Below, piece after piece: positions 3,448-53,397 of a stretch of 64,000 bases of DNA. Source of the stretch: Adineta vaga (Eukaryota; Animalia; Rotifera); the NCBI GenBank assembly GCA_021613535.1, contig CP075494.1:4836001-4900000 (forward strand), read 5' to 3'. Position numbers and translations under genes: made by a program. Each line of letters begins with the position of its first letter. Position 1 is the stretch's first letter. A model generated the notes under the pieces. It ran no database searches and had not been told where the DNA came from. It saw only the letters and a list, made by a program, of their open reading frames with translations.

Positions 3448-5299
3448 TCATTTCCATCGTACATATAAATAAATCTCCTTACAATTTCGTTCAATTGTAC
3501 AATTAAGAAATAAGCGTTCATCAGAAATTACTTTTTATAAATCATTTATCATTGCATTATCAATGGTCGGTAAACAAAAGCAGAATAATCGAAAACGAAA
3601 ATCAAGTTTGATGTAAATCATCGATAGAATATGTTGAATAAACGTTTTAATATTGATCTGATTCATATCATCTATTTTAATATATTTCAAACGAGGAAAA
3701 AATTTCATAAGAAAATGAATTTCTCTCATATTTGTTATCTTCATCAAATTCAATTTGGTTATTGGATTTGACTTGGATTCTGAATGATAAATTAATAAAT
3801 CTTGATTGGATATATAACCATTTTCTTCTAAGGATAACGAATGAATTCTTAATGAATCAAGTTCTTTGAATGAAGATAAAATTTCACTTAATTCAAAAAT
3901 AGTAACTTTTTCTACAATTTCCAAATGATAAATATTTGTTATACTTAAAACATGATCAATATTTTCTAGTAATACATCAAAATCATCATATGCGACAATC
4001 AATCGCGTCGCTTTTGAAAGCTTGTTGAAAGATTTACTCATTTTCTTTTGTCCATCATCATACCATCTCTTTCTAAATGAATTAATCAATCAATAGGAAA
4101 GAAAATATAATTCGAAGGAATCTACTTAGGTGACTGAATTGCGTATGTAATTAAATGATAATCAATATTGACATCAAGTATCCAATTTCGTTCAATCCAA
4201 AATGGTGAAATGAATTGATTACGCATGTTAAAATACGCAGAATCTTGACAATAATTTCGAAAGGCTATAGAATAATTCAAATGAAAATCTTCTAATCTAG
4301 GTAAATATTGAACAATTAATTGTTCCCATCGATTACTATCGAGATAGGTAATATCATAAGATAAACTTGAAAGACGTATATATGTTAATGAACAATTAAT
4401 TTTACTAATGAACATTTCAAATTCATTAAATGTTACATAATAAACATATAGAATAAGATGTGTTAAATTTGATAATGTTATTGATGAAGTAATGTTGATA
4501 TGCTCATGAATATTAGTTGTATAAACACAATTGAGATGACAAAGTTGAGGTGTATAAGAAGTTAATCGAGAAAGATCTTGAAAAGTACAATCATGACCAA
4601 TATCAAGATGTTCAATAGTACTCAATTGTTTATTGTTGATTGGTATTAATGAAATACTATTTTGATCACCATGAGAAATGAATTTGTTGTATTTTAACTT
4701 GGGCAAATCGAATATTAATCGATAGATTTCATTGAGATTAGTATATGTATTCCATCCTTCGATAATCAATGAAAATAAACGAGGTAAACAAACTAGATTA
4801 ATAAGGATTGGAATAAGTACATTTGATTCGATTTGTACCATGTGTAGTGATTCAAGATGATCGAATGATGAATTAATAGTTAGTTCTGGAAATAATAGAT
4901 CAGTATATATTGGTTTTAATAAACAAAGTGAATAGATTTGATGTTTATTTATATGTTGAAACTGTTTGTAATTATTTATACATGTTTCATTCGATTCCGA
5001 AAGATAAAGTTGAATTTTAAATAGAAGTGATGAAGAATTGATTAGTTTATTGAAACGAGTATTAAGATTTGTAAAAGCATTGCGAATATCAATACCATCA
5101 AGATAATCAAATATTTCATAGAATAATTCATTAGGAAAGTTTTCGATAGAAATTATGGATAGTCTTTCATCCAATGTAACTAAATAAATATATGAAAAAA
5201 AACAAGATAACAACTAGCAGGTTCAATCTTACTTCGAAATCGTTTTGTTCCTCCATCAAAGAAATTCGATGGTCGTTTATTCTTATCCATTGTATGCAT
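3448..5299 (-). CDS. F-box/LRR-like protein with a probable premature TAA near the C-terminus
   Basis: F-box-like IENFPNELFYEIFDYLD and LRR-like LxxLxL repeats over three exons. After TAA at 3535-3537 the frame stays open (KVISDERLFLNCTIERNCKEIYLYVRWK) to TGA at 3448-3450. Confidence 0.75.
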
Positions 5300-5742
5300 T
5301 TCTTTGGACTATTTAGTTTGATCTATACTGTTAACTATTATATATATATGTACAAATTTGTTTAGATTGGTTAGTTTTTCTTAACGAAAGAGAATGAACG
5401 ATGGTAGCATAACATTTGAATTCTTTTACTTTTTCACGAGAAATATAACTTCGATGAATCATTCTTCATTTCTGTCGTAGTAAACGCAAAATATTTCAAA
5501 ATCAATATTACACTATACATGCAAAATGAGAATATGTTCTTTTGTGAATAAATGTATAAAGCACAAATATCTATTGATGTAAAAATAAAATGGTAGGATG
5601 ACTCATTACATACAGAATAGAAAAGAAAATAGTTCTTCTTTCTTCAAAACATGTGAGAGAAAGAGCGGTTATTACACAAGTTAAAAGTAATGCATATACA
5701 TTCTATGATAGTAGATCATGCAAGTTTTTCGTCTAATAATAA

Positions 5743-8700
5743 ATGACGACAGATTCGAACGTTTTTATAAAACCAAGTTTTTGGGAATGTGATAGTTGTC
5801 AACGTATTCTTAAACATGGTGAATTTCGTTTTAATTGCACTGTTTGTCCTGATTATGATCAATGTGAAACCTGTGCAACATCTAAACAATCGATTCATCC
5901 TCATCGATTAGTTCGTGAAGTTGCGTATGGTTATGTCGAGCAAGTAGAATGCACTCGGGAAGATTTGTCTTCGCGAATTCAAACTGCAATTACAACTTAT
6001 CAGGATCGTTTTTGTATGGGTGTCCGAGATATTGATTCAAATAATCCAGGAAACTATGTAGATTCATATTCATGGCAAACATTTAAAACAATCGGTGAAC
6101 GAATAATAAATTTCAGTCATGGATTACGACGTTTGATGAAACCACGTGATTTTCTTGCTATTTGTGCAGCTAATCGACCTGAATGGTTAATCACGGATTT
6201 TGCATCTATTCTACAGAGTTTTATTACTGTACCTATCTATTGTCTTTTCAATGATCGTGAAGTTGCCTTTATTATCAGAAATACACCTATATCTATTGTC
6301 GTTTGCGATAGAGATATGTTACCAAAATTTATTCGCATACATTCCGAATGTCCTACATTACGACACATCATATGCATGGATCCAATCGTTGAGCCCATCT
6401 CAAGTAAGTTAAAAAAAATGACTAATTATTCGAAGAGAAACTTTTGAAATCAATTTTAGAAATAGATGGTTTGTCTATTCATGATATGAGTACTATTGAA
6501 AGATATGGTTCAATGAAACGATATGAATATGTTCTTATTAAACCTGATGACTGTATTACTATTATATATACTAGTGGTAGCTCAGGATTCCCCAAAGGAG
6601 CTATGATCTCGGAGAGTTCATATAGAAGCAATTTTCCACCGTTAAATTTATCATTTCGAGATGAACATGTTAAATTGTGTTATCGACCATTAGCTTGGGC
6701 AACCGATCGGCAAGGTTCAATTGCAGTATTTCTCGGTGGAGGACGTATTGGATTTTCAACAGGTGATGTCAATCGTCTTATGGAAGAATTACTTTTAGTC
6801 AGACCAACAAGTTTCTCCGGTCCACCAACGATTTGGAATAAAATCTATTCGGAATATAAAGCAACTCTTTCATTAATAACAACAGATCAATCAATCAATG
6901 AAGTAGAAAAGAGTGAAGAAATACTTTTAAAACAATTTGCAAAATTAATTCCAAATCGATGTAAAATCCTTTCGATTGGTGGTGCTATGGTTAGTCCGAA
7001 TGTTTTCAATTTTATGAAACGCTGCTTTCCACAATGTCACATTATGGAATCTTACGGAACTACCGAATGTGGAAGTATAACTTTCGATAATCTTCTTGAA
7101 AATGCTATCGAATATCGTTTGGAATCAGTCATCGAAATGGGTTACACACTTGAAGATAAACCATTTCCACGAGGAGAATTATTAGTTAAAACACAGAAAA
7201 TGTTTTTAGGATATATTAATAATCCTGAAGAAACCAAAGCGGCATTTACTGATGATGGATTTTTTCGTACTGGAGATATCGTTGAATTACGTCCTGTAGA
7301 TGATGGTCAACCTACAATACGTGTTATTGATCGAAAGAAAAATTTTTTCAAGCTTTCACAAGGACAATTTGTATCACCGGAATTTCTCGAAGATATCTAT
7401 CGACAAAGTCCATTCGTTGAGCAAATCTATGTACATGGTAATCTTCTTGAGGATTCTGTTGTAGCAGTGATCGTACCAAACAAAGAATATGCTCGAGCAT
7501 TTGCGAACAAACATAATCTAAATGATTTCAATACTAATGAAGCAGAGAAATTATTATACAATGCGATTATGCAAGATTTACGATCATTAGCAAAGAAAGA
7601 ATCACTTCGAAAACATGAAATTCCATGTAGATTTATTATTAGCTTTGAACCATTTACATCTGAAAATGGTTTACTTACATCTTCAATGAAACTTTGTCGA
7701 TATCGATTAGCTGCTCATTTCAATGATCAATTGAAAACTAATGAATCAGTCGAAAATCGACTAAAGAATCTGATTGAAAAAGCCACCGGAAAGGAATTAA
7801 TCGTAGATTCATCAACAAATTTTATTTCTATTGGTGGTGATTCATTGGCTGCTGTACGTCTTTCTCGTATGATACACGAAAACTTGGGAGTATCGATTCC
7901 ATTGAATTTTCTTTTTGATTCTAATATGACTTTGGAAAGTTTAGCCGATATAGTAAAGAATCCATCTCAAATCTCAGCAATATCCGATTCCATCGTACCA
8001 CAACTATTACATGATGCTGAAGAAGAACTCAACGTACAGATTGGTGAAAAGAAAAGTACAGTTGATTCCCCCTCGGTTATTTTTATTACAGGAACAACTG
8101 GTTTCATTGGAGCTTTCTTATTAAACGAACTATTGAAAGTATATCCTTCTGATTGTAAATTTGTCTGTTTAGTACGATGTGAAGAATCTGTATCATCATT
8201 CGATCGTATTCGAGAAAATATGGTATTTCTCAAATTGTGGAAGGAAGAATTACGAGATCGTATTGTTGCATTGCGTGGTGATCTTGCTCAAGAATGCTTT
8301 GGACTTGATGGTGAAACGTATTGCAAATGGGCAAGTCAAACAGATATAATTTTTCATTGTGGTGCGATAGTTAATTTTATATTACCTTATAACAAACTCT
8401 ATCGTTCCAATGTTTGCGGAACGCGTGAAATAATTCGCTTTGCAACTTATAATACTGCAACATGTATTCCCGTACATTACATATCGACAATGAGTGTACT
8501 GCCTTCGACGACACTGTACAATGAAGTGCCTATCGATGAAATCTCACCAAATCATTTGAAAAGCGGTTATTCACAAAGTAAATGGGTAGCAGAGAAACTT
8601 ATTGATAAAGCCATTCGTCTCGGTCTACCAGTGACAATCTATCGACTTGGATCAATGTGGGGTGATACTGAAACTGGTGCTTGTAATCAACATGATATTC

Positions 8701-9158
8701 ACACATTATTACTCGGAGCAATCATAAAAACTAGTTGCTATCCAAAAACAGTTACCAATACAAAACTAAATGGTTTACCCGCAAATTTAGCAGCTCAAAG
8801 TATTGTTTCATTGAGTCGTAATCAATCGAATGGTTATGGTAAAATCTATCCTATTGTTCCATCAGGTAATGGAATATCATTTCAGACTATCATCGAAAGT
8901 ATGCAAGAGTGTGGTATGACACTTAGCGATGTTTCATACGATGAATGGAAAATGAAATTAATGGAACAATCAACAAAAAAACAATCTTATGAATCGATCG
9001 CCGAATTTTTTGCCGACAATCCATTCGAACGAAAAGCATTTCAAAATTCAGCGATCGATCATGTTTACGTTGTGAAATGGCTGCAGTTTATATCAAGTCA
9101 TATTGTTCATGGAATTTCTCAAGACTTAACTAATAAGACCGCCAACGACAACCAATAG
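5743..9158 (+). CDS. ZZ zinc finger fused to a carboxylic acid reductase-like NRPS module (A-T-R)
   Basis: One intron (6404-6459) joins the 234-aa and 904-aa ORFs in frame. ZZ: CDSC...CTVCPDYDQCETC...HPH. A domain: YTSGSSGFPKG, YGTTE, FRTGD, DRKKNFFKLSQGQFV. T domain: GGDSL. R domain: TGTTGFIG, GYSQSKWVAE. Confidence 0.92.
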
Positions 9159-9316
9159 AGAGAAGGATTAAATTAGAGCTCTTTTCTTTTGAACATCTTT
9201 ACATGTTTTCGTCTGTGTCATCTATTGAATTGAAAACTCTTTGTTTCCTCCGAAATATTATTTTAAAATAAAAATCATGTCTCAATATCTTCAAAATCTC
9301 GTCAGTAATCAGGCAC

Positions 9317-11161
9317 CTATATTGTTGTTGTTGTTATATGATTGGTTATCAGTGAACACTCTTTCCGTCGTTGATTAAAATAAACAGCATTTGAAATCAG
9401 ATAAACAGTAATTGATAATAATACGCAAATAATCAAAAGTACAGGGAAATATTTCCAATCATGATCAATTACAATACCTGAATCATTTTAAAACTATACT
9501 TTCTTTTTTTTCCATATATTCACAAACAATCTATTTACCTGCCAGATTTTCAAAGATGATAGATCCGAGTGATGATGCACAAAGAAGTAGAGCAAGAAAT
9601 ACAGGTGTTATGTTCAATCGTTGATTGATTAGACCCAACGATAAAGGAAATAATGGAGCAAAGATTAATCCAGTAATTGCACTAAGAAGATTTAAAGTTG
9701 TTAAAGTCAAATCGGTAGTCCAAATCAAAAGAAGCCATCCGAGAGCTGAGCATAATCCACCAAACCAAATAATATTCATACAATTATAAACAGAGAACAT
9801 TAAAGATACAATTGCTACAATTAATCGACCAATCTACATAAAAGGATAATAATAAAAATAGAGCTCTCTCTCCTGTGTGCTAATTAATCGATCTGTGGTA
9901 CATACCGAAAATGAAAGCCAATATAAAATAGTGCCTAAATTTGCAGTCTTATTTGTGATATGAGATTGTTCAGATCTGAGGTACGTAAATAAGAATTTAG
10001 AAAAAATGTGTTCGTCTGCCGCGATAAAGAATTTATAAGATAGAAATATTATTGATAGAAATAAACCATATCGGTAATTTCCCCAACCAAACGTACCAGG
10101 AGAATATGATAAAACTACATGTTGATCTTCGAAATGATTCGTATTTTCTGCATTTGTTCTCAACGTGCAGTGATCAATCTAAATATTTATTGAAATTTCT
10201 TATTTTTTTAAGTAAATAACCAATTGTCTATCAAACTTTTAATCTTTGTCTTTGATTTTTGCAATCTCGAATATAAAAGATGACATGTCCAGCAGCAATT
10301 AAAACACATAAACTTGTCGTAATGAAATACAGAATGGCAAGATTGGAATTTTCATTTATTTTAACAATTCTTGTATGGTCTGTAATACTGATTGATGAAG
10401 GTTTTTCAATAAGAAATGGTCGAGCGAACAAATTGACAAATATAGCACCGATTCCATATCCAAATTGAACAATACTTATTGGAGTTGCTGCGTGTTCACC
10501 CCAAATACTCAATAGAATATTAAGTCCAGCTAGTCAAAAATAAATCAATATCATTGAAATTTTAAGAAAATTTTCTTATTATTACCTAAATCAGTAAGTC
10601 CTTGCGAAGCTCCTTGAAAGAAAAACAAAATACACATTAATACCAATGATGTTACAAATGGTGTAGCACAAACCACTAAAATCACACAAAATCCGAGTTT
10701 ATCTTTCTACATGATGCATTCATTTTACTTATAGCTGATATGATAAATGAAAGAATCAAAAGACCTTCAGGATATTTGTCCACAGTATTTGGTATAATAA
10801 GACCGAGCATATTAGCAATTAAATAGCCGAAGTTTCTTAATGCGAGTGCAGATACAATATCACCGTATCCGATTTTAGTATGTTCAGCCAGTCTTGGTGA
10901 TGTTGCATTAATCAATTCAAGATGCAAACCCTTTAATAATACAAAAACATTATTATTCATAGTTTATTCAATTAATACACGTTCATGAGTAGATTTAGGA
11001 TACTTGTACAATTTTATAGGACTATGATGAGTTTTCTTACGTATGAGACATACCATAATAATCCAGGTTAAAAGAAGAAATCCCGTTTGCATTAGATTCC
11101 ATTGATACTTTAAATAAATTCTTATTCCTGGTGGTGACTGTTCAATTAATTTCATTATCAT
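9317..11161 (-). CDS. MFS transporter, MFSD4/fucose-permease-like (copy 1)
   Basis: Multi-exon hydrophobic ORFs with GLHLELI, QFGYGIGAI and GLIFAPLFP; colinear with the adjacent paralog. Confidence 0.8.
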
Positions 11162-30714: not shown

Positions 30715-31628
30715 ATGAGTCGATACTTGGAAGGTGAAATTGGCAACAAAAAACTACCACCAATAGGTGCCTACTGGCAACATTCTTTATTTCCACTCGA
30801 ACAAGCTTTAGAACCTGTTATGGATCGTATTAATGGACTAGATCGATCCATTAAAGATGCTAAACGGTATTGCTGCTATCCATCAAAACATCAGTTGACA
30901 AAGGATGAGTCAGCTGCTGTGTATCTATATACGATGGAAGGTGGTGATAACAGCTTTTATCGTATATTAAATGAAGCTCTTCGCTCAGAAAATCGTCGAG
31001 CACTTCGATCATGGTTTGGCTTTCTTAAACTATTCGATACAGCCCTCGCCAAACTACCCGTCGTCAAAAGATCTGTTTGGAGAGGTATATCTGGAGATAT
31101 TAGTAAACAATTTAAGAGGGGTGAATTATTAACATGGTGGAGTATAAGTTCGTGTTCAACGGAACTAGAAGTTGTTCAAGATTTTCTCGGATCAAACACG
31201 AATGCCACTCTTTTGATGATTGAGACTAAAAATGCGAAAGATATTAGTGGATATACAAGTTTTCCCGATGAAAAGGAAATATTATTGGGACCAGGTACTG
31301 AACTGCGCGTGGAAAGTAATGCATTACACCATGGAGCTTTACATATCGTGCATTTGATTGAGGTACATGAGGGTAACGAAGACTCATTGTCAACTGCTAT
31401 GAGTTCTATGGAATTATTACCCAAATCGAAAAGTTCAGGTACAGTCACTGATGAACATTGTCTAAATTTTGTGATGAAATCTATTGTTTTATCAGAGAAG
31501 ACATGTATTTTTGTTTACACAATAGTATTTGAAAAGGGACTCTAATTCTTTTTCTACTGTAGGTAATCCACAATCGGCATGGACTTCGGCTTCTGCGGAG
31601 CCCACACTCAAAAAAAGCACAACAACAA
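30715..31628 (+). CDS. NAD+-arginine mono-ADP-ribosyltransferase (R-S-E clade); last exon unresolved
   Basis: AAVYLYT, VWRG, WWSISSCS and DEKEILL (ExE). No signal peptide. A probable small second exon (about 31563-31628) ends at a GTAAGT donor. Confidence 0.85.
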
Positions 31629-44055: not shown

Positions 44056-47000
44056 ATGAATGAATCAATCGTAAATCATTTGTTTCTGCCTCATTATTTA
44101 CCGTCTTGTGCCGAACAAGATTTTTTAACGCATGGTAATCATGAAAATGAATATAAATTACTAGAATGCATGAAAGAATATTTTTATTCTATGAGTACGA
44201 CGGCCATGTTACCATTGTTTGAAACTATTCATCGTTGTATGGTACAATGGTCGAACTTACAAAATCCACAGAATTTTTCGGTAGGAAGTATTCGATCCGC
44301 CATCGAACAAATGTCATCAGGAAGTTTTCTTCCTGTTTATTTCCGTGCTCAAAATGCTGCCATATTAATTGAAATTGATCATATAAATGTCAATCAACCG
44401 ATAATATCAGCTTGGCAAGTTTTATTACCAGCTGGAGAAGTGACGTCGACGATGGTGCCCCATCTTGCTTGTTTTCCAATAACGACATACAAATTGCAAG
44501 ATCGAGCACAATTAACTTCTACAAGTCATTGTGAATTATTAATTGATTTTATGAATCATACTATTGAATATTCGAAAGCATCAAAAGCTTCTCGTGAAGT
44601 TGATGAAATACGTGAAGTACCAGAATCACATTACGTGTGTCAATGGTGGATTCAACACTTCGATAATATAGAAATAATTGAAAATAGTAATCCATCTATT
44701 CGATTTAATAAAAAACATCGTGATCAAATAAGACTTAATGGGGGTTTGGTACCTTTTCGACGATCAGGATTGTGGATGACCATAAAAACAGTTCTTCATA
44801 CCATCCTCACTAAACATTTGGGACTTACGACGAGTACCATCGTTTATAAATTATTGATTACTCAATTTTTAACACATGTCATTTATAAACAAAACATATC
44901 GACTGATCTACAAGTTCACTGTGTGCGAAAAATTGTTCGACGATTAAATAAAATTGAATGTTTACCAGCAGAAATGGAAACTGATGGTATGAGCACGTGG
45001 ATTCAACGAACGAAACAAGATATAGTATTAAAAATAGATGAGATAATTCCAAAACCAGTTTGGCAAAAACGCATCCCATCGAAAAATACAAAAGAAAACA
45101 GCTCATTAGGAATCAACGTTCAGTTGAAAAATTCGAAAATCTATCGCCATTCATGTCTTGAATTCAAAACTTATTTAGAAGAGTTGAAGTCAATTGCAAC
45201 ACCTCATTCTGTCTTAGGTCTGAACAGTTACATTGACAATAGCAATGTTCATCAAGCAGATTATATACCTTCCATGAAAATCTTAACAGACCATTTTAAG
45301 TATACTATCGACATAGTTTTAAGTCGTATAGAACTATGGGTTGAATCAAGTTTAGAAGTATGGATCAATCGAACAGCAACGTTTCAAAACAACAAAAATC
45401 GTTTTAGTGTTTTATTAGATTTCTTTGAAGAATATCAAATTGCAGCACTGAACCATTGTTGGTCAGAGAAGGGACCAACGGATACTACGAGTTACAGTCG
45501 ATTTATTCTTACGTCTCTAACAATTATTCGTTGTATGTATGACAATCTCTGTAAAAATCCAAGTTTCGAACGATTGAAATTGCACTGTATCAATATACCT
45601 AATCTACTGGATTCATTTGAATACTTGATTTTACCAAAACAAACAGATATGATTAGGGCTCGAGCCTTGTACAATTATCTGGATGAATTTAGTCGTAAAA
45701 GTTATCCAGATCTTTTAATTAATATAAAGTCATGTGATGCATTTGGTGTCTACTATGCTAATCGATCATCGATGATGAATGAGAGTATACAAAGAATTCG
45801 AGATCAAGCTGATCGAGATCAGCAACAGAAGATAAGAGAAGTGAACGATGCGAAAGAAAGATATAGACAACTTATTAATTCCATAAGTGGTCTGTCTTGT
45901 ACATGTGATTATCAATATGTGTATTGGAGGAAATGTCACAGATGCATTACTCAAGAACAAGCCAATACCATTCAAGTAGGGATTTTTGAATGTCCTATGC
46001 CAAAAGAAAAAGAAAGTGCACTAGCCGTTATTTTTGAATTACAAATGCCCACTGAAATAAGATGCTATCGAGAAATTCTTTGGCAATTTATCAATCGACC
46101 AAAACCATCAATACTGAAAAATAATATGTATGAATGGTTACACGTTTCTCCTCATCAGGAAAAACTAGGCTCGTACTTTACTGGTCGACATGATTGCAAA
46201 GTGAAACTAGTATCTCAAGTAACTTCTGCTACTCAAACCCACTACCGCTATCCACCTTCTATTGTATCAACACCTGTCGAAGGCTTTCTATTTGACAATA
46301 GTTTAGAAGTTCAGATATCCTTGATGCAACCAATCAGTTTTGAAGATGAACGCCGAATATTAACACCTCGACTCAATCATCTCAGTTACAAACAATTACA
46401 ATTCACTCTGAACACAACAGAATTTTTACAAAATAATGTCATAGCTAACTTATCTAGTTGTCCGACACGTATAAAACCTTTTCAATTTGTGGAATTCGGT
46501 TCATTTCGATCAGGTCATCGTTTACAATGGTGGAATCTTCTAGTAATATTAGAAATGGATTCCTTATCGATCGCTGAAGAAAGTGTAGCAATACTTATCA
46601 TACATTCAATATTACAATATGGTCCATTAAAGACAGATCAAAGTCTTCTGCCTAATCACTGGTGTACAGAATCGCATCAACAAATATTTAAAGATCATTT
46701 TGTAGATGAACTCCTTGATCGATTAAATCATCATTTAGATAATATCGAATTGAATTGGCAAAACGAACTAGCTTTAGTTGTTATAACAGCAATTACAATG
46801 AGAATTTTTACTTTATGTAATCCAACAAGAATAAATGAAGTTGTTGAATTAGTAATGAAATGTCGTAGAATTGGTGAGGAATGGATTATTCGTATATTGA
46901 CAAGTATTCAAACGATATCAGTTGCAGATTTGGATGAAATTAAAAAACTTCATCTTAAAATGATACATATAAGTATCTGTAGTATTTTAACATTTTCAGC

Positions 47001-50000
47001 CGATCCGAACCGTATTCATTCTTTATTATGTACAAATCAACATGTGGTATCTTTACTCAAAGCAACAACTATGATTCATGATAATATTATTCTAAGCAAA
47101 AATGAATCGGATATGAGTATCTTTATGAAAAATTTAATGAGATATAGTAAACATATTCTAGTAATTATACAGCCAACTATTGCTGATTATTTGCAGAAAA
47201 CATCTTTTGAAGCTTTAAATGAATTCGCAGCGATTTACTGGGCAGTTATTAGAAGTAAAGGTAAAATGAATGAACAATGGAAGAAACGATATGTTGATAT
47301 GCATGATGGTTGGTACGATTGCCAATATGAATCAAGATTGATATCGATTGATTGTATTCAAGGATTGTTTTTAGTCGACGAAATGACAATCGGTTTCTTA
47401 CCTGAGCAAATTACGTCAAATGAATTATTTACTCGTGTTTTTGATTCTCATGTATTTGAAGTACAAGCAGCTGAATTACCTCATACATATATTACAAAAC
47501 ATTCATATCATAATGGAAGAGTTCTGTATGAATTTCACTTCGATAATCGGACCAAGTGTTTGATTGTTAACGAACGACATCTACAACAAGACAATATGTT
47601 TCAATTGATTCCACATCACTGCTTTGAAAAAGAACTGCCAGATACATTCGTTTCAGATCATAGTCATTGGTGGAATGCAAAAACACGCCATTTACAATTT
47701 CGACCTGTTCAGTTCCAGAATAAAGAGTTCTTAGATGATAAACCCTATGTGTTGAACATGGATACGGGACATGTTATTACTGTTGAAACAGATAACATGC
47801 AAATGTTAGTCAATCAATCATCGAAATTCTTTTGTAGTTTGTTTTCGAGTTACTTTAGTCGTCTTGATGATCAACCATATGTATATATGATGCGAGACAA
47901 TAATTATAAATCTAACGTCATCATTCATATCTATTTGTCTCGATTAAATATTGCATTTCAATATAACTCTGACACTCAAGTAATTATTTCTCGAGAATAT
48001 TCAGATATGCGTATTGATCAAAATCAATGGTTAGGAACATTGACAGGTTTAACATCTGGTCTTCTTCTATCACCATTGTCCATCAATAATCAGACATTAG
48101 AAAGTTATCCATATCGAAAATTGATCGTACCTTTTGGAAACGTTCTTGTTACCGCGACTACTTTCTCTGATCATCAAACTGTTACCATTCAACGAACATC
48201 AATTCCAAATGAGTTTCTTCGTCATTATTTTGTTTTTATCTTAAATGATCGACTAAATATTCTTCAATCAACTGATAGTCCTACAGGATGGTTTTATTTA
48301 GCATTATTACATGCAATGACTTCTCATCCATTACCAGATGAGTACACTAAGATGGCTGGAATGGAACGTGCCTTTCAATTATTAAATTCAGCTGGTTGTT
48401 GGTCTGATCAATCTTTCGATGGACTTTCGCTCAATATTCTTGCTCAAATAGCATCGATTTCACCTAAAGTTAATTATTTTCCACCAACGCTTCAGCTTAT
48501 GGTAAAGATAGATTGGAATAAAAATGGTTTAGCATATTCTTTGCAACATTTTGGATATTATTTGATAGCCAAACAATTAATTAATGCCAGTCAACAATTT
48601 AGTTTTATGTATCCATCCTTGAATTCAAATAAAACTCCAGAAGTATTCGAGGGAAAATTATATAATGAAACATTATTAAAAAAGCTTTATTGGGAATATC
48701 GAGATTCGTACAATCCTATTGCTAGATTATCTTCGATGATAGAAGAAGATATACAAAAACTATGTTACTCATCACCACATCAATCAGATCCAGAATATTG
48801 TTTACATATAGCAAGTTATAATCCTGTTTCTCTTACTACTAATTTGTATAGTAAAGGCAATGTAAAACTGAAAGACTGTTTTGTGCAGAACTATTTACCT
48901 TTGTCACAATGGGTGTCTGATGAAAATCAATTAAAAAATATGTGGGTGGGTCTACTAAAAATAATATATCAGATCAAACAAGAATCTAATGAACACACTA
49001 CAGATAACATCAAACGGATAGAAAACTTATTGGACTTTCTTCATTATATTTCTAGACAATGTAATGTTGAACCATTTTATATACAAATCCTTAAAACAGT
49101 ACTGGAATCTTCGACAACATTGTTGGAATGTGTAACATTTCCTCAGTTTATCACCTATGAACGAATTGAAGATATTACTTTTGTGAGAAATCAGATCGAT
49201 TTCATAGATCATCATACTCCATATGATAAAAACCGAATCATGTCAGAGATCGAAAGCTGTTTTTCGACTAACTGTTGCTATGAGGATAAATGTCGTTTAG
49301 TAATTCCAGCAAATGTAACACAAGTTAACCAATTATTCACATCTTGGCGAAATAATCATAGACTTCATTCATTTCTCAGTGATGTTCAAAATCGTATCTG
49401 TTCCACGGCAATAAAAATGTTCAAAATAAAAGTATCATACCAACCTCAAACATTTTCGTGTGAACGTATTGAAAATCACCATACAATACAATTGAAAGTG
49501 AGTTGTGAACCAATCGATCAAACATTGGTACAAAGAGCACATGAAAAATTCTATCAGAATCATTCAACTCAATTTAATAAAACAATCGTTTCTCTTCAAC
49601 CGACTACAGATCAGAAAGAATTTCCACATGATATTTTTCCTTTCACTGATGATCAAAACAATCCTCTCAGTGATATTACTAATTATTTTAAAAATCATTT
49701 AACTAAAAGCTGGGGCAAACTGTTCGAGGAAGAAGAAAGTGAAAAAGTAGATCCTTCAATTGAAGAAATCAACGTATTTCTTCACTCCTTAAGAGAAGAA
49801 TCCACAAAGGAATGGAATGAACTAAATGAATCTATTCGAACATCAAACGAACAACTATTCGAAAGTGGTCTTGTTTCAAGAATTACTCCAACAACGTTAA
49901 TTTATCTTTTGCAACAAATAGGAACAACAATCGATCTAAATATCGATCAAAAGACATTGTTAGGTGGTATTCTTGTTAGTTGGACATTAGAACAGCAACT

Positions 50001-53000
50001 TGAAAGAGCATTGCATTTTGCTGCTCATGAAAAATGGGAAGATCTCAAAAAAGAAATATTCAATACACCACATTGCAATTGGATACCATCGGAGCATATT
50101 CCGTGGTTAATTTTAGAATTAGAAATGAATATAACCATCCGAGAAGCACAAATCAAAGTCGCACGTCATATGATGCAATCAGTAATCGTTCCGAACGATA
50201 CAACAGTGAAGAATATTGTCATGCAAATGAATATGGGTGAAGGAAAAACTTCGGTTATTTTACCAATGTTAGCTCTTAGTCTATCTTCAACTCATTCTAG
50301 TTTAGTTCGTATTATCGTGCTAAAGTCATTATTTCCAACGAATTATCAATCATTACGATATAAATTAGGTGGCTTACTTAATCGACGAATTTTTCCATTT
50401 GTATGTCGCCGTGATCTGAATTTTAATGATGCGCAAATCAAACAGATTTCTAATCGTTTTCAACAAGGATTACACAATTGTGACGTCGTATTAACAGCTC
50501 CCGAAGATATTCTATCTTTTGATTTACTTACCATGGATAAATGTCGACGAGAAGAATTTGATGTTGGTCAATCGATGTTAACACTTCAACGATGGTTAAA
50601 ACGCTATATTCGTGATGTATTGGATGAATCCGATGAAATTCTACATGTAAAATATCAATTGATCTATACTATTGGTGGTCAACAACAAGTCGATGGAGGT
50701 GTTAGTCGATGGGAAACAATTCAGTCAATACTTGATTTAGTTAAGAAACATGCAGCAGAAATTTCAAGAACTTTTACTAATGAAGTTTGTTACAAACCAC
50801 CAGAACGCAAAAGTGCTTTTCCACAATTTCGTTTACAATCACAGGTGCCATTTCCACAATTATGCAAAAACATCGCCGATGATTGGTTGAATCAACGATC
50901 TCTTCGACACAATGCTAAAGACGCTGTTTTATCATTTATTCTCAAAACAGAATTATCAGTTGACACGCTATTGAATAAATTTCCACTATATGATCTTCAA
51001 TTATTTCTTATTGTTCGTGGTTTATTATCCGCAGAAGTCTTATTGGTAACTTTAAAGAAACGTTATCGAGTAAATTATGGTATTAATCCAAATCTTTCAT
51101 TGAATCGTCTATTAGCTGTTCCATTTCGTGCAAAAGATGTTGCAACTGATAGAACTGAATTTGGTCATCCAGACGTTGCACTTGTATTAACGCATCTCAC
51201 ATATTATTACTCTGGTTTAAGTGATTCACAAATGACTCAATGTTTTGATCGATTGAGTGAAGAAGAAACTGATTCGGCATCAATTTATGATCAATGGATT
51301 TCATATGAATATACTGATGATATACCAACAAGTATTAAACAATGGAAAGGTGTAAACTTGAAAGATTATCAACAAAAAACTCAATATTTATTTCCAAAAT
51401 TACGATACAATATGTTAGTAGTTAACTATTTTCTTAATCATTTTGTATTTCCTCGAGAAGCAAAACAATTTCCATATAAATTAATTGCATCAGCTTGGGA
51501 TTTATCGTCTTCTTCGCGATCGAAAATCATCACTGGATTCAGTGGTACAAATGATACACAATTATTATTACCTATCGACATTCGTCAAGATGATTTACCT
51601 GAATTACAAAAAACTGATGCCATTGTTGTGAACAATTTATTACAACGAGAAAATGAAAGTTATCAATCTTTACCCATCAATATTATATCAAATGAAATTC
51701 TAGAACAAATTCTAAAGCACAAAGAGAATATCAATGTTATTTTAGATGTCGGTGCTTTGTTCATCGATGGAACTAATCAAGATATTGCCATGAAATGGTT
51801 AAATCTATCAAATAAAACTCAAATCGATTATGCTGTTTATTTTAATTCGGATTCCATTGTTGTCTGTGATCGACAAAATCATCCGCCTCATCTATTTGTC
51901 ACCTCTCCGGCAAGTGAACGATTAGATCGATGTGTCTTCTATTTAGATGAAATTCACACAAGAGGAACAGATTTTAAATTTCCTAAAGGTTTTCGTGCTG
52001 CAGTTACATTAGGAAATGGTTTAACTAAAGATCGTTTTGTGCAAGCATGTATGAGGATGCGAAAATTAGGAAATGGTCATTCATTAACATTCTTAAGTTC
52101 CTATGAAGTCCATCATCAGATTACAAGATTAATATTGAGAACAAATCCAAACACTAGTATTACTGTTAAAGATATTCTCCGTTGGGTTTACGAGAATACA
52201 GTATATACTACGTGGGATGGATTACATCATTGGGCTTCACAAAGTTTAAGTTTCCAACGAAAAGTGACAGCATTTCAAGGAATCAATTGGAATAACTATG
52301 AACAAATATTCACAAATGAAATGATGAAAGAATTAGCAAATGCATGCTTAGAACCAGAAATTATTGAATTAAAAGCTATGTATGGTGCACGTCGAGCACT
52401 TCAGACAGTATTCGACATTCATTGTGAGCGATATCGACAGAATAAACACTTCCTATCGCCAAGAATAAGGAAGATAGTGATACAACGGTTGTTAGATTAT
52501 GGTGGAGGGAAAACACGTTTATCACAGTTATTAGATGAAGAACAACAACGAGAATTAGAACAAGAATTAGAAGAAGAACGACAATTAGAACGTCCTCCAC
52601 CTGTCAAACCACATCCAGCGGTACTATACGAAGAAATCAAAAGACTAGGTGATATATCAGGTACTGTAATGGATTTAACACAATTTCCTCAGGTATTCCG
52701 TCCTTTGTCATATGCGTTTATCGACACAACGTTTCAGTCTCTGTGCCAAGCAAACAGTTGGTCATCGAATTTATGGATTTCAACAGAATTCCAACGTGTT
52801 ATTAGCACCAAAGGAGAATCTTTAGATCCATTTCTTCGTCCTCCAAGATGGGTTCTAATCTATCGTAATCAACACATTATTTTTGTCAATGCATTAGAAG
52901 CGAATTGGTTAATAGGACGTTTACAATCGAATTCATCTCCGATAACTACGTTACGTTTATTATTACCACGTGTTAAAAGAATTCAATCAATTCTCGTTAA

Positions 53001-53397
53001 CACAGCAACTCTGACAGTTCCACCAACTATTCAGCTTCCGAAAGATTCAATATTTTTGACCAAATCACTCGAATTATTAGTTCAATTCTTTATCTTCAAT
53101 GGTACTCTCTTCTTTGAAACAGACGATGAACAAACAACATATTGCGAATGTTTAAGTTTATGTCCAAAGCCTCGAACGAACAATGAAGAAGAAGCTTTTC
53201 AAAATGGTTGGATCGATATTGATGGATATGTTGACAACGCTGAACATCGTCGTCAATTAAGAATCAATCGAGTTTTGTTCAACTCCAATCCATTACTTTT
53301 CATAAAAACACTTTTAGAAATTCGAAATAATGCACATGCTACAATTACATCACATATTGGTAGTATTATTCTTAATTCAATGAAACTCTTTAACTAA
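44056..53397 (+). CDS. Giant (3113 aa) intronless DUF3638/DUF3645-family protein with an SF2 P-loop ATPase-like core
   Basis: NHLFLPHYLP N-terminus, FGSFRSGHRLQW, LALLHAMTSHPLPD, QMNMGEGKTSVI, DVLDESDE, AVPFRAKD...EFGHPDV, GFSGTND, YLDEIHTRGTDFK, QACMRMR and EEQQRELEQELEEE. Confidence 0.88.
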   Translation: MNESIVNHLFLPHYLPSCAEQDFLTHGNHENEYKLLECMKEYFYSMSTTAMLPLFETIHRCMVQWSNLQNPQNFSVGSIRSAIEQMSSGSFLPVYFRAQNAAILIEIDHINVNQPIISAWQVLLPAGEVTSTMVPHLACFPITTYKLQDRAQLTSTSHCELLIDFMNHTIEYSKASKASREVDEIREVPESHYVCQWWIQHFDNIEIIENSNPSIRFNKKHRDQIRLNGGLVPFRRSGLWMTIKTVLHTILTKHLGLTTSTIVYKLLITQFLTHVIYKQNISTDLQVHCVRKIVRRLNKIECLPAEMETDGMSTWIQRTKQDIVLKIDEIIPKPVWQKRIPSKNTKENSSLGINVQLKNSKIYRHSCLEFKTYLEELKSIATPHSVLGLNSYIDNSNVHQADYIPSMKILTDHFKYTIDIVLSRIELWVESSLEVWINRTATFQNNKNRFSVLLDFFEEYQIAALNHCWSEKGPTDTTSYSRFILTSLTIIRCMYDNLCKNPSFERLKLHCINIPNLLDSFEYLILPKQTDMIRARALYNYLDEFSRKSYPDLLINIKSCDAFGVYYANRSSMMNESIQRIRDQADRDQQQKIREVNDAKERYRQLINSISGLSCTCDYQYVYWRKCHRCITQEQANTIQVGIFECPMPKEKESALAVIFELQMPTEIRCYREILWQFINRPKPSILKNNMYEWLHVSPHQEKLGSYFTGRHDCKVKLVSQVTSATQTHYRYPPSIVSTPVEGFLFDNSLEVQISLMQPISFEDERRILTPRLNHLSYKQLQFTLNTTEFLQNNVIANLSSCPTRIKPFQFVEFGSFRSGHRLQWWNLLVILEMDSLSIAEESVAILIIHSILQYGPLKTDQSLLPNHWCTESHQQIFKDHFVDELLDRLNHHLDNIELNWQNELALVVITAITMRIFTLCNPTRINEVVELVMKCRRIGEEWIIRILTSIQTISVADLDEIKKLHLKMIHISICSILTFSADPNRIHSLLCTNQHVVSLLKATTMIHDNIILSKNESDMSIFMKNLMRYSKHILVIIQPTIADYLQKTSFEALNEFAAIYWAVIRSKGKMNEQWKKRYVDMHDGWYDCQYESRLISIDCIQGLFLVDEMTIGFLPEQITSNELFTRVFDSHVFEVQAAELPHTYITKHSYHNGRVLYEFHFDNRTKCLIVNERHLQQDNMFQLIPHHCFEKELPDTFVSDHSHWWNAKTRHLQFRPVQFQNKEFLDDKPYVLNMDTGHVITVETDNMQMLVNQSSKFFCSLFSSYFSRLDDQPYVYMMRDNNYKSNVIIHIYLSRLNIAFQYNSDTQVIISREYSDMRIDQNQWLGTLTGLTSGLLLSPLSINNQTLESYPYRKLIVPFGNVLVTATTFSDHQTVTIQRTSIPNEFLRHYFVFILNDRLNILQSTDSPTGWFYLALLHAMTSHPLPDEYTKMAGMERAFQLLNSAGCWSDQSFDGLSLNILAQIASISPKVNYFPPTLQLMVKIDWNKNGLAYSLQHFGYYLIAKQLINASQQFSFMYPSLNSNKTPEVFEGKLYNETLLKKLYWEYRDSYNPIARLSSMIEEDIQKLCYSSPHQSDPEYCLHIASYNPVSLTTNLYSKGNVKLKDCFVQNYLPLSQWVSDENQLKNMWVGLLKIIYQIKQESNEHTTDNIKRIENLLDFLHYISRQCNVEPFYIQILKTVLESSTTLLECVTFPQFITYERIEDITFVRNQIDFIDHHTPYDKNRIMSEIESCFSTNCCYEDKCRLVIPANVTQVNQLFTSWRNNHRLHSFLSDVQNRICSTAIKMFKIKVSYQPQTFSCERIENHHTIQLKVSCEPIDQTLVQRAHEKFYQNHSTQFNKTIVSLQPTTDQKEFPHDIFPFTDDQNNPLSDITNYFKNHLTKSWGKLFEEEESEKVDPSIEEINVFLHSLREESTKEWNELNESIRTSNEQLFESGLVSRITPTTLIYLLQQIGTTIDLNIDQKTLLGGILVSWTLEQQLERALHFAAHEKWEDLKKEIFNTPHCNWIPSEHIPWLILELEMNITIREAQIKVARHMMQSVIVPNDTTVKNIVMQMNMGEGKTSVILPMLALSLSSTHSSLVRIIVLKSLFPTNYQSLRYKLGGLLNRRIFPFVCRRDLNFNDAQIKQISNRFQQGLHNCDVVLTAPEDILSFDLLTMDKCRREEFDVGQSMLTLQRWLKRYIRDVLDESDEILHVKYQLIYTIGGQQQVDGGVSRWETIQSILDLVKKHAAEISRTFTNEVCYKPPERKSAFPQFRLQSQVPFPQLCKNIADDWLNQRSLRHNAKDAVLSFILKTELSVDTLLNKFPLYDLQLFLIVRGLLSAEVLLVTLKKRYRVNYGINPNLSLNRLLAVPFRAKDVATDRTEFGHPDVALVLTHLTYYYSGLSDSQMTQCFDRLSEEETDSASIYDQWISYEYTDDIPTSIKQWKGVNLKDYQQKTQYLFPKLRYNMLVVNYFLNHFVFPREAKQFPYKLIASAWDLSSSSRSKIITGFSGTNDTQLLLPIDIRQDDLPELQKTDAIVVNNLLQRENESYQSLPINIISNEILEQILKHKENINVILDVGALFIDGTNQDIAMKWLNLSNKTQIDYAVYFNSDSIVVCDRQNHPPHLFVTSPASERLDRCVFYLDEIHTRGTDFKFPKGFRAAVTLGNGLTKDRFVQACMRMRKLGNGHSLTFLSSYEVHHQITRLILRTNPNTSITVKDILRWVYENTVYTTWDGLHHWASQSLSFQRKVTAFQGINWNNYEQIFTNEMMKELANACLEPEIIELKAMYGARRALQTVFDIHCERYRQNKHFLSPRIRKIVIQRLLDYGGGKTRLSQLLDEEQQRELEQELEEERQLERPPPVKPHPAVLYEEIKRLGDISGTVMDLTQFPQVFRPLSYAFIDTTFQSLCQANSWSSNLWISTEFQRVISTKGESLDPFLRPPRWVLIYRNQHIIFVNALEANWLIGRLQSNSSPITTLRLLLPRVKRIQSILVNTATLTVPPTIQLPKDSIFLTKSLELLVQFFIFNGTLFFETDDEQTTYCECLSLCPKPRTNNEEEAFQNGWIDIDGYVDNAEHRRQLRINRVLFNSNPLLFIKTLLEIRNNAHATITSHIGSIILNSMKLFN

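Follow-up and report, generated by a model that had tools for sequence, protein, structure and literature searches.

Why does an enzyme resembling a carboxylic acid reductase (CAR) carry a zinc finger at its N-terminus in a bdelloid rotifer, and in which lineage were the two joined? The gene that raises this question, I4U23_023324 of Adineta vaga, occupies positions 5743-9158 on the plus strand of a 64,000-nucleotide stretch of DNA (G000:C5:4836001-4900000, G+C about 30%; hereafter the window) from an assembly of six contigs and 100.8 Mb. It encodes a ZZ-type zinc finger followed by an adenylation (A), a carrier (T) and a thioester reductase (R) domain. A sequence-only reading of the window had taken it for a foreign enzyme, similar to nonribosomal peptide synthetases (NRPSs), that gained a eukaryotic peptide-sensing module in this lineage. 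We arrive at a different explanation. I4U23_023324 is spliced and transcribed and, as judged from sequence comparison, is probably a member of a eukaryotic family of ZZ-fused CARs (ZZ-CARs) that was acquired already fused from an amoeba-like eukaryote; its core appears to be of CAR type, and the ZZ would act as a ligand-binding adaptor.

Gene structure and transcripts

The coordinates given for the gene by the sequence-only reading were exact, and two coding exons make up its reading frame. The start codon at 5743 is immediately preceded by an in-frame TAA (5740-5742), and the stop codon ends at 9158. On the DNA, the open reading frames (ORFs) 5743-6447 and 6444-9158 lie in different frames; the frames of 5743-6403 and 6460-9158 join only once a 56-nt spliceosomal intron of phase 1 (6404-6459, GTAAGT...TTTTAG) is removed. 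Coding exon 1 (5743-6403) comprises residues 1-220 and the first base of codon 221; the ZZ, the linker and the first part of the A domain lie in it. Coding exon 2 (6460-9158) comprises residues 221-1119 and the stop, with the remaining A domain and the T and R domains. The database record "hypothetical protein I4U23_023324 [Adineta vaga]" (P0001, 1119 aa) is an exact protein match, and its sequence across the exon junction is exactly the splice prediction. We searched exon 1 (5743-6402) and exon 2 (6462-9155) separately and used the database record for all whole-protein work.

For the transcripts, contigs of four public runs were aligned to positions 5400-9400 (4001 letters). The contigs from three of these runs, all of one study, skip 6404-6459 with GT..AG ends and are therefore RNA-derived. 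They start at 5693 (X1) or 5713 (X2 and X3) and end at 9186-9278, delimiting a 5' leader (5693-5742, its frame closed by the TAA) and a 3' untranslated region (9159-9278). A single contig (5693-6146) runs from the leader through the entire ZZ into the A domain, and another bridges 6024-7784 over the splice joint, although the contigs do not prove one molecule end to end. Since spliced RNA contigs begin upstream of the ATG, the ZZ is included in the transcript; a transcript start downstream of the ZZ, a case considered in the sequence-only reading, is not what the RNA contigs show. Inspection by eye also shows, in the leader region (5705-5790, plus strand), two short upstream ORFs that start with the ATGs at 5705 and 5718 and run over the main ATG.

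An A-T-R enzyme of CAR type

The matches of I4U23_023324 to Pfam are ZZ, AMP-binding, PP-binding and NAD_binding_4, which places the A, T and R domains in this order on one polypeptide. The A domain, of the ANL type, extends over approximately residues 75-650 (5965-7748, interrupted by the intron), the carrier domain over residues 654-718 (7758-7952) and the R domain, which also matches TIGR01746, over residues 761-1095 (8079-9083). The GGDSL motif is read at 7833-7847, its serine S682 at 7842-7844, and the YSQSK motif with Y924 and K928 at 8568-8582. Across 70 aligned homologues from bdelloids, protists and bacteria, K266, E423, D493, R512, K631, S682, Y924 and K928 were invariant. The catalytic set is present: the P-loop lysine K266, the A10 lysine K631, the phosphopantetheine serine S682 and the R-domain tyrosine and lysine Y924/K928. 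The intact A, T and R motifs described before, preceded by a ZZ, were thus borne out by the Pfam matches, the motif positions and the eight zinc ligands of the finger described below.

The best NCBIfam model was the CAR equivalog NF041592, which the protein matched with 472.5 bits, below the cut-off of 1300. This match starts at residue 67, corresponding to profile position 26, and the ZZ stands in place of the first approximately 25 profile positions. Among solved structures, the best relatives by sequence were two CARs, from Nocardia iowensis and from Segniliparus rugosus, with E values of 4e-92 to 3e-86. The full-length AlphaFold model had a mean pLDDT of 87.8, with 85-91 in the ZZ and 78-90 in the linker, and its top eight Foldseek matches were all CAR structures of the A domain or of the A domain with its carrier (A-PCP; E down to 1e-50, TMt 0.56-0.78). 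Pfam found no condensation domain (PF00668) in I4U23_023324, so the protein is only NRPS-like and not a true NRPS. The A. vaga genome contains two phosphopantetheinyl transferase (PPTase; PF01648) genes, at G000:C2:8650604 and C5:9958259. I4U23_023324 is an intact, expressed A-T-R enzyme of CAR type, with an activity predicted from its sequence.

The bacterial CARs (Nocardia iowensis, Segniliparus rugosus, Mycobacterium CAR/FadD9; NF041592; PDB 5mso, 5msp, 5msw and 6oz1) share with the rotifer protein the A-T-R order, the FadD9-type A domain and the catalytic residues, and they are its best solved matches, with E values reaching 4e-92 and a fold TM of 0.71-0.78 on the target. Nevertheless, they are only approximately 24-29% identical to it, form a separate clade and lack the ZZ, whereas the rotifer gene is eukaryotic and intron-bearing.

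The ZZ finger and its pocket

The Pfam ZZ model (PF00569) matched residues 15-55 (5785-5907) with 26.1 bits against a gathering cut-off of 21.4 (E 7.8e-6). The zinc ligands are complete and in cross-brace order (C16/C19, C32/C35, C41/C44 and H52/H54); across 37 homologous fingers, seven of the eight are invariant and the remaining one is at least 90% conserved. An AF2 model of residues 1-75 had a core pLDDT of 82-91, and the PDB matches listed for it by Foldseek were all ZZ domains or ZZ-containing proteins (best probability 1.00). The conserved ligands, the confident fold and these matches make a chance match untenable: the finger is genuine and N-terminal, and zinc binding is predicted. It has the same cross-brace C4-C2H2 zinc fold as the ZZ domains of p62/SQSTM1, p300/CBP, HERC2, Nbr1, BIG and KCMF1.

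The sequence-only reading had proposed a pocket of the p62 type. In p62, the groove of the ZZ is lined by D129, N132, D147 and D149, and R139 also touches the ligand (PMC6197226). Aligned by eye on the cysteine framework, the equivalents of D129, N132, R139, D147 and D149 are D17, Q20, R29, D37 and D39, so that the three aspartates claimed for the rotifer finger are indeed present. The same pocket residues are also found in the ZZ fingers of p300/CBP, HERC2 and Nbr1. By structure, p62 with an Arg-Glu peptide ranked marginally first in Foldseek, followed by CBP/p300, BIG and HERC2 with SUMO1 or H3 tails, and Nbr1 was also among the matches. By sequence, the best match was Schizosaccharomyces pombe Nbr1 (2.7e-8), followed by p300/CBP (4e-6 to approximately 5e-6), HERC2 (1e-5) and p62 (1.8e-4, a partial match). 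Among 42 bdelloid members of the family, the aspartate triad was DDD in 14 and DND in 11, and it was largely lost in one subclade. Because Nbr1, p300/CBP and HERC2 match better and the triad is complete in only those 14 members, the pocket is not specific to p62, and this part of the sequence-only reading is not supported. The third aspartate is the most constant, being kept in 35/42 bdelloid fingers and in all 17 protist fingers that have the five-residue segment. I4U23_023324 has all five pocket residues, and its counterparts in A. ricciae and R. socialis have four of the five. The protein is not a p62 orthologue, since it lacks PB1, UBA and LIR regions; in addition, the spacer between its first two cysteine pairs is longer, with 12 residues. 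In human p62 this spacer has 10 residues.

The same fusion in protists

An exhaustive search of representative sequences returned many proteins with 30-40% identity whose alignments begin at query residues 8-16 and include the ZZ. With a local hidden Markov model (HMM), an N-terminal ZZ-like finger was found in 52 of 145 non-bdelloid representatives. In Amoebozoa, the ZZ-bearing proteins that could be named come from Cavostelium, Stenamoeba, Protostelium, Clastostelium, Pelomyxa, Mastigamoeba, Acytostelium, Dictyostelium and Balamuthia (a partial copy, P0179); outside Amoebozoa they come from Anaeramoeba (Metamonada) and Ancoracysta. No finger was detected in Thecamonas, Rhizamoeba or another Balamuthia copy. 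Pfam confirmed the ZZ in the proteins of Dictyostelium, Pelomyxa and Anaeramoeba, and the orthologues of D. discoideum, D. citrinum and D. firmibasis have it in their precomputed domain lists, although they are named only "hypothetical" or "carrier domain-containing". A feature search of the ESM Atlas, in clusters of at least 50 members, returned bacterial and fungal CAR clusters only, none of them with a ZZ.

The protist proteins (for example, Cavostelium apophysatum P0123, Dictyostelium discoideum P0294, Pelomyxa schiedti KAH3744291 and Anaeramoeba ignava KAJ5070375) have the four-part layout of the rotifer protein, with the ZZ at the extreme N-terminus, and most have the finger subtype with the 12-residue spacer. 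They are 27-40% identical to I4U23_023324 and are annotated only as hypothetical, as "carrier domain-containing" or by similarity; none is characterised. The fusion thus proved widespread, in many protists, one part of an objection that the sequence-only reading had raised against itself; the other part, that the architecture is already characterised, did not stand, as we found no paper that describes it.

Two of the protist genes showed peculiarities of their own. The Mastigamoeba balamuthi homologue (P0209) contains two identical ZZ copies, at residues 470 and 669, approximately 200 residues apart, which could be an internal duplication or an artefact of the gene model. The deposited model of a Pelomyxa schiedti gene (P0153; L027:2340-2760) seems to omit the P-loop exon: a frame with SSGSTGVPKG follows an unannotated intron directly behind "...IIYT".

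Origin of the bdelloid gene

We built three trees from the A-T-R part of the proteins, with the ZZ columns removed: a FastTree tree of 134 rows, a quick site-mixture IQ-TREE tree of 46 rows, and an IQ-TREE tree of 26 rows under LG+G4 with 1000 ultrafast bootstraps. In all three, the bdelloid proteins formed one clade (100/100), and the Cavostelium protein was sister to all bdelloid copies (99/99). The ZZ-less bacterial CARs, whose members score 1036-1357 bits on NF041592, formed a separate clade (100/100). Forcing the bdelloid proteins and the bacterial CARs together cost 63.8 log-likelihood units, and this grouping was rejected by the approximately unbiased (AU) test (p = 0.007). The nearest relative is a ZZ-bearing amoebozoan protein and not an actinobacterial or fungal CAR.

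The finger itself was examined separately. We built an HMM solely from the fingers of non-bdelloid (protist) ZZ-CARs and scored other ZZ domains with it. The bdelloid CAR fingers reached a median of 55.7 bits (I4U23_023324: 57.8), compared with a median of 38.1 and a maximum of 48.5 bits for the best 18 of the remaining A. vaga ZZ domains. With the generic Pfam ZZ model the order was reversed, the other A. vaga domains scoring above the bdelloid CAR fingers. The spacer between the first two cysteine pairs was 12 residues long in 38/38 bdelloid and 17/22 protist ZZ-CAR fingers; in all 18 other A. vaga ZZ domains it was 9-11 residues, and in none was it 12. By the scores and the spacer, the finger belongs to the ZZ-CAR lineage and was not recruited from the rotifer's own ZZ repertoire. 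This repertoire is apparently large, with at least 65 ZZ (PF00569) matches in the assembly.

All named animal matches of the protein are bdelloid; after these come protists and bacteria. By these comparisons the gene is foreign to animals, and most likely a bdelloid ancestor took the whole gene, ZZ included, from an amoeba-like eukaryote.

We also looked for an intron shared with the donor lineage and found none in the three amoebozoan genes checked, in which the intron at residue ~220 is unmatched. The D. discoideum orthologue is intronless, and the Acytostelium intron lies elsewhere (approximately residues 300-308 on I4U23_023324). The Pelomyxa gene has roughly a dozen or more introns; one of these lies five residues off in the same variable loop but is of phase 0 and so differs in phase.

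The family within bdelloids

A word-based search showed the family to be large and to occur in Adineta, Rotaria, Didymodactylos and Philodina. The ZZ stands at the start of nearly every complete model, and the shorter members are truncated gene models. The A. vaga genome has at least eight copies of the ZZ + A-T-R family; the intron position at residue ~220 is common to at least five of these paralogues, and two copies on C1 are intronless.

The nearest paralogue, I4U23_023313 (P0059; G000:C5:4817395-4820761, plus strand), lies 24 kb upstream, just outside the window, and has the same intron position. Its ZZ lacks all three acidic pocket residues (CVNC...CINYNLC). Approximately 4-5 kb further upstream, a minus-strand ORF of 335 aa (G000:C5:4812634-4813365) contains two ZZ matches. 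A further copy at G000:C3:10405708-10408851 (minus strand; L003:1071-5117) was not counted in the family: it has 25% identity and no ZZ or PP-binding match in Pfam. This ORF is intronless and 1348 aa long, with A and R domains and an N-terminal extension of approximately 330 aa.

Proposed course of events and alternative explanations

We propose the following course of events. The ZZ would have been fused to the enzyme in the eukaryotic ZZ-CAR family before the transfer. A bdelloid ancestor would then have acquired the gene, which, bearing the intron at residue ~220, multiplied to the present copy number in A. vaga. By homology, the A domain would adenylate a carboxylic acid with ATP and load it as a thioester onto the phosphopantetheine arm of S682, an arm that one of the two PPTase genes may supply. 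The R domain, with its Rossmann fold and Y924/K928, would reduce the thioester with NADPH and release the aldehyde. We infer this chemistry because the CAR catalytic set is fully conserved. The ZZ would not be catalytic; as a ligand-binding adaptor, it would probably tether the enzyme to a protein partner or to an N-terminus, which is the least certain step. We favour such a tethering or ligand-reading role because the pocket is kept whole in I4U23_023324 and nearly so in the A. ricciae and R. socialis counterparts.

Several observations weigh against this explanation. The score on NF041592 (472 vs 1300 bits) is far under the CAR equivalog cut-off, so that the enzyme may act on another substrate and yield another product than the bacterial CARs do. 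Biosynthetic neighbours or a gene cluster around the gene were not found within the window. The donor rests on one sister sequence, that of Cavostelium, which is derived from a transcriptome. In addition, the trees do not settle the deep branches among the eukaryotic sequences, and we accordingly make no claim on where the fusion first arose. Finally, the pocket residues vary among paralogues while the zinc ligands stay constant, which suits a structural role of the ZZ at least as well as a reader role.

This last observation leads to the most serious rival, in which the ZZ is a structural zinc module only, capping the N-terminus of the A domain and helping it to fold or remain stable, with no ligand of its own. 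The zinc ligands alone are universally conserved: they are constant over the 37 homologues while the pocket drifts, with aspartate or asparagine at two positions and all three acidic residues lost in one bdelloid subclade. The position of the ZZ, in place of the start of the bacterial CAR profile, and the fairly high model confidence through the linker are also in keeping with such a cap. A predicted complex of the ZZ (residues 1-70) with the A domain (71-660) scored 0.00, which is no evidence for or against docking. Against a purely structural module stand the constancy of the third aspartate in bdelloids and protists and the pocket, which is whole in I4U23_023324 and nearly so in its two bdelloid counterparts. 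We regard the structural role as possible, although clearly less likely than the adaptor role.

A bolder form of the adaptor explanation can also be put forward: ZZ-CARs could be an unrecognised eukaryotic class of aldehyde-forming reductases, brought to bdelloids by eukaryote-to-animal transfer, whose ZZ, of the degron-reader type, senses the free N-terminus of a protein or peptide and thereby switches or positions the enzyme. Taken as a whole, this form seems to us unlikely.

Alternatively, the pocket might bind the amine of the substrate itself, for instance an amino acid or an amino-fatty acid, and present the substrate to the A domain; the products would then be amino-aldehydes or alcohols instead of plain fatty or aryl aldehydes. 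The ZZ of p62 also binds free arginine (title of PDB 6mj7; PMC6197226), within NRPS modules the R domain is able to release an alcohol, and N-formyl-tyrosinol is the product of a mollusc Fmt-A-T-R enzyme (PMC11869996). Yet the A domain of I4U23_023324 is of the fatty-acyl/aryl CAR-FadD9 type and not of the amino-acid type, and nothing ties the ZZ spatially to the active site, the predicted complex deciding neither way. We therefore consider this mechanism very unlikely.

As for the origin, the gene could have descended vertically, as an ancient eukaryotic gene kept by rotifers and lost in other animals, with no horizontal transfer. The family is indeed spread over several eukaryotic supergroups, and the gene bears an intron and lies mid-chromosome with ordinary genes around it. 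This explanation is, however, highly improbable. Every named animal match is bdelloid, the sister group is a single amoebozoan lineage, 40% identical, and not a deep branch, and loss would be needed in essentially every other sampled animal; in a review of the NRPS genes of animals, none was found for the monogonont Brachionus (PMC10531068).

In the explanation of the sequence-only reading, the rotifer took up a CAR from bacteria or fungi, to which a host ZZ of the p62 type was added afterwards, so that N-terminal Arg degrons would gate aldehyde output or enzyme location. This explanation fits the p62-like pocket residues (D17, D37 and D39, with Q20 and R29), the first Foldseek rank of p62 with its Arg-Glu peptide and the presence of the ZZ in the transcript, but it has little chance of being right: many Amoebozoa, as well as Anaeramoeba and Ancoracysta, have the fusion, one of these proteins being sister to the bdelloid clade, the rotifer's other ZZ domains are of a different subtype, the Nbr1, p300/CBP and HERC2 fingers are closer in sequence than p62, the triad is complete in a third of the bdelloid members only, and the bacterial sister group was rejected by the AU test, so that a gain of the ZZ in the rotifer is already largely refuted.

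Comparison with other animal enzymes

The nearest described animal analogue is the mollusc FmtATR of the bursatellin pathway (PMC11869996), which is likewise encoded by an animal, stands alone and has an additional domain in front of its A-T-R core. It differs in that this domain catalyses formyl transfer, while its A domain accepts tyrosine and the enzyme yields an alcohol (PMC11869996); I4U23_023324, by contrast, has a zinc finger, which is non-catalytic, ahead of an A domain of the FadD9 type. Bdelloids also have horizontally acquired NRPS and polyketide synthase (PKS) genes (PMC11258130; PMC10531068), which resemble the ZZ + A-T-R family in being foreign, of biosynthetic type, expanded and expressed. 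The screens that found these genes needed a condensation domain or antiSMASH NRPS calls (PMC11258130; PMC10531068). The ZZ + A-T-R family, on the other hand, has no condensation domain, its nearest relatives are eukaryotic rather than bacterial, and it is undescribed in both papers.

Other features of the window

Besides an F-box-like ORF and a probable transporter, the gene has ORFs of ART, Kelch, NIF/BRCT, DUF3638 and PhoD-like type as its neighbours within the window. Directly upstream of the gene, two adjoining ORFs lie on the minus strand (3535-5213); the larger one (4122-5213) matches the F-box weakly, falling slightly short of the Pfam cut-off. Directly downstream, four short hydrophobic ORFs in series on the minus strand (9531-10960) resemble, by eye, the exons of a membrane transporter. 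Further along the plus strand are an ORF of 276 aa that contains an NAD:arginine ADP-ribosyltransferase (ART, PF01129) domain (30715-31545), an uninterrupted ORF of 3113 aa with DUF6606, DUF3638 and DUF3645 (44056-53397), which is an unusually long intron-free gene for the A. vaga genome, and a single ORF of 677 aa with a PhoD-related phosphatase domain (PF19050; 53855-55888).

Significance of the ZZ-CAR family

To our knowledge, the known CAR classes are bacterial and fungal. Literature searches that paired ZZ with CAR, adenylation or thioester reductase found no paper describing the fused family. On the basis of its sequences, this family is an uncharacterised eukaryotic class of ZZ-fused CARs and not a rotifer-specific chimera. 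It spans Dictyostelium to the rotifer, where it has expanded. CARs are sought after as biocatalysts, and a eukaryotic CAR class with a built-in ZZ would add new enzymes and possibly a new mode of control. Most of what is known of ZZ fingers comes from proteins of ubiquitin, autophagy and chromatin biology. Fusion to a metabolic enzyme is unusual for a ZZ and offers a setting for finding its ligand. The existence of a D. discoideum orthologue means that the function is open to genetic testing in a standard model organism. For bdelloids, it provides a case in which a multi-domain gene seemingly had another eukaryote, and not bacteria, as its source; the gene has since been retained, is spliced and expressed, and has multiplied.

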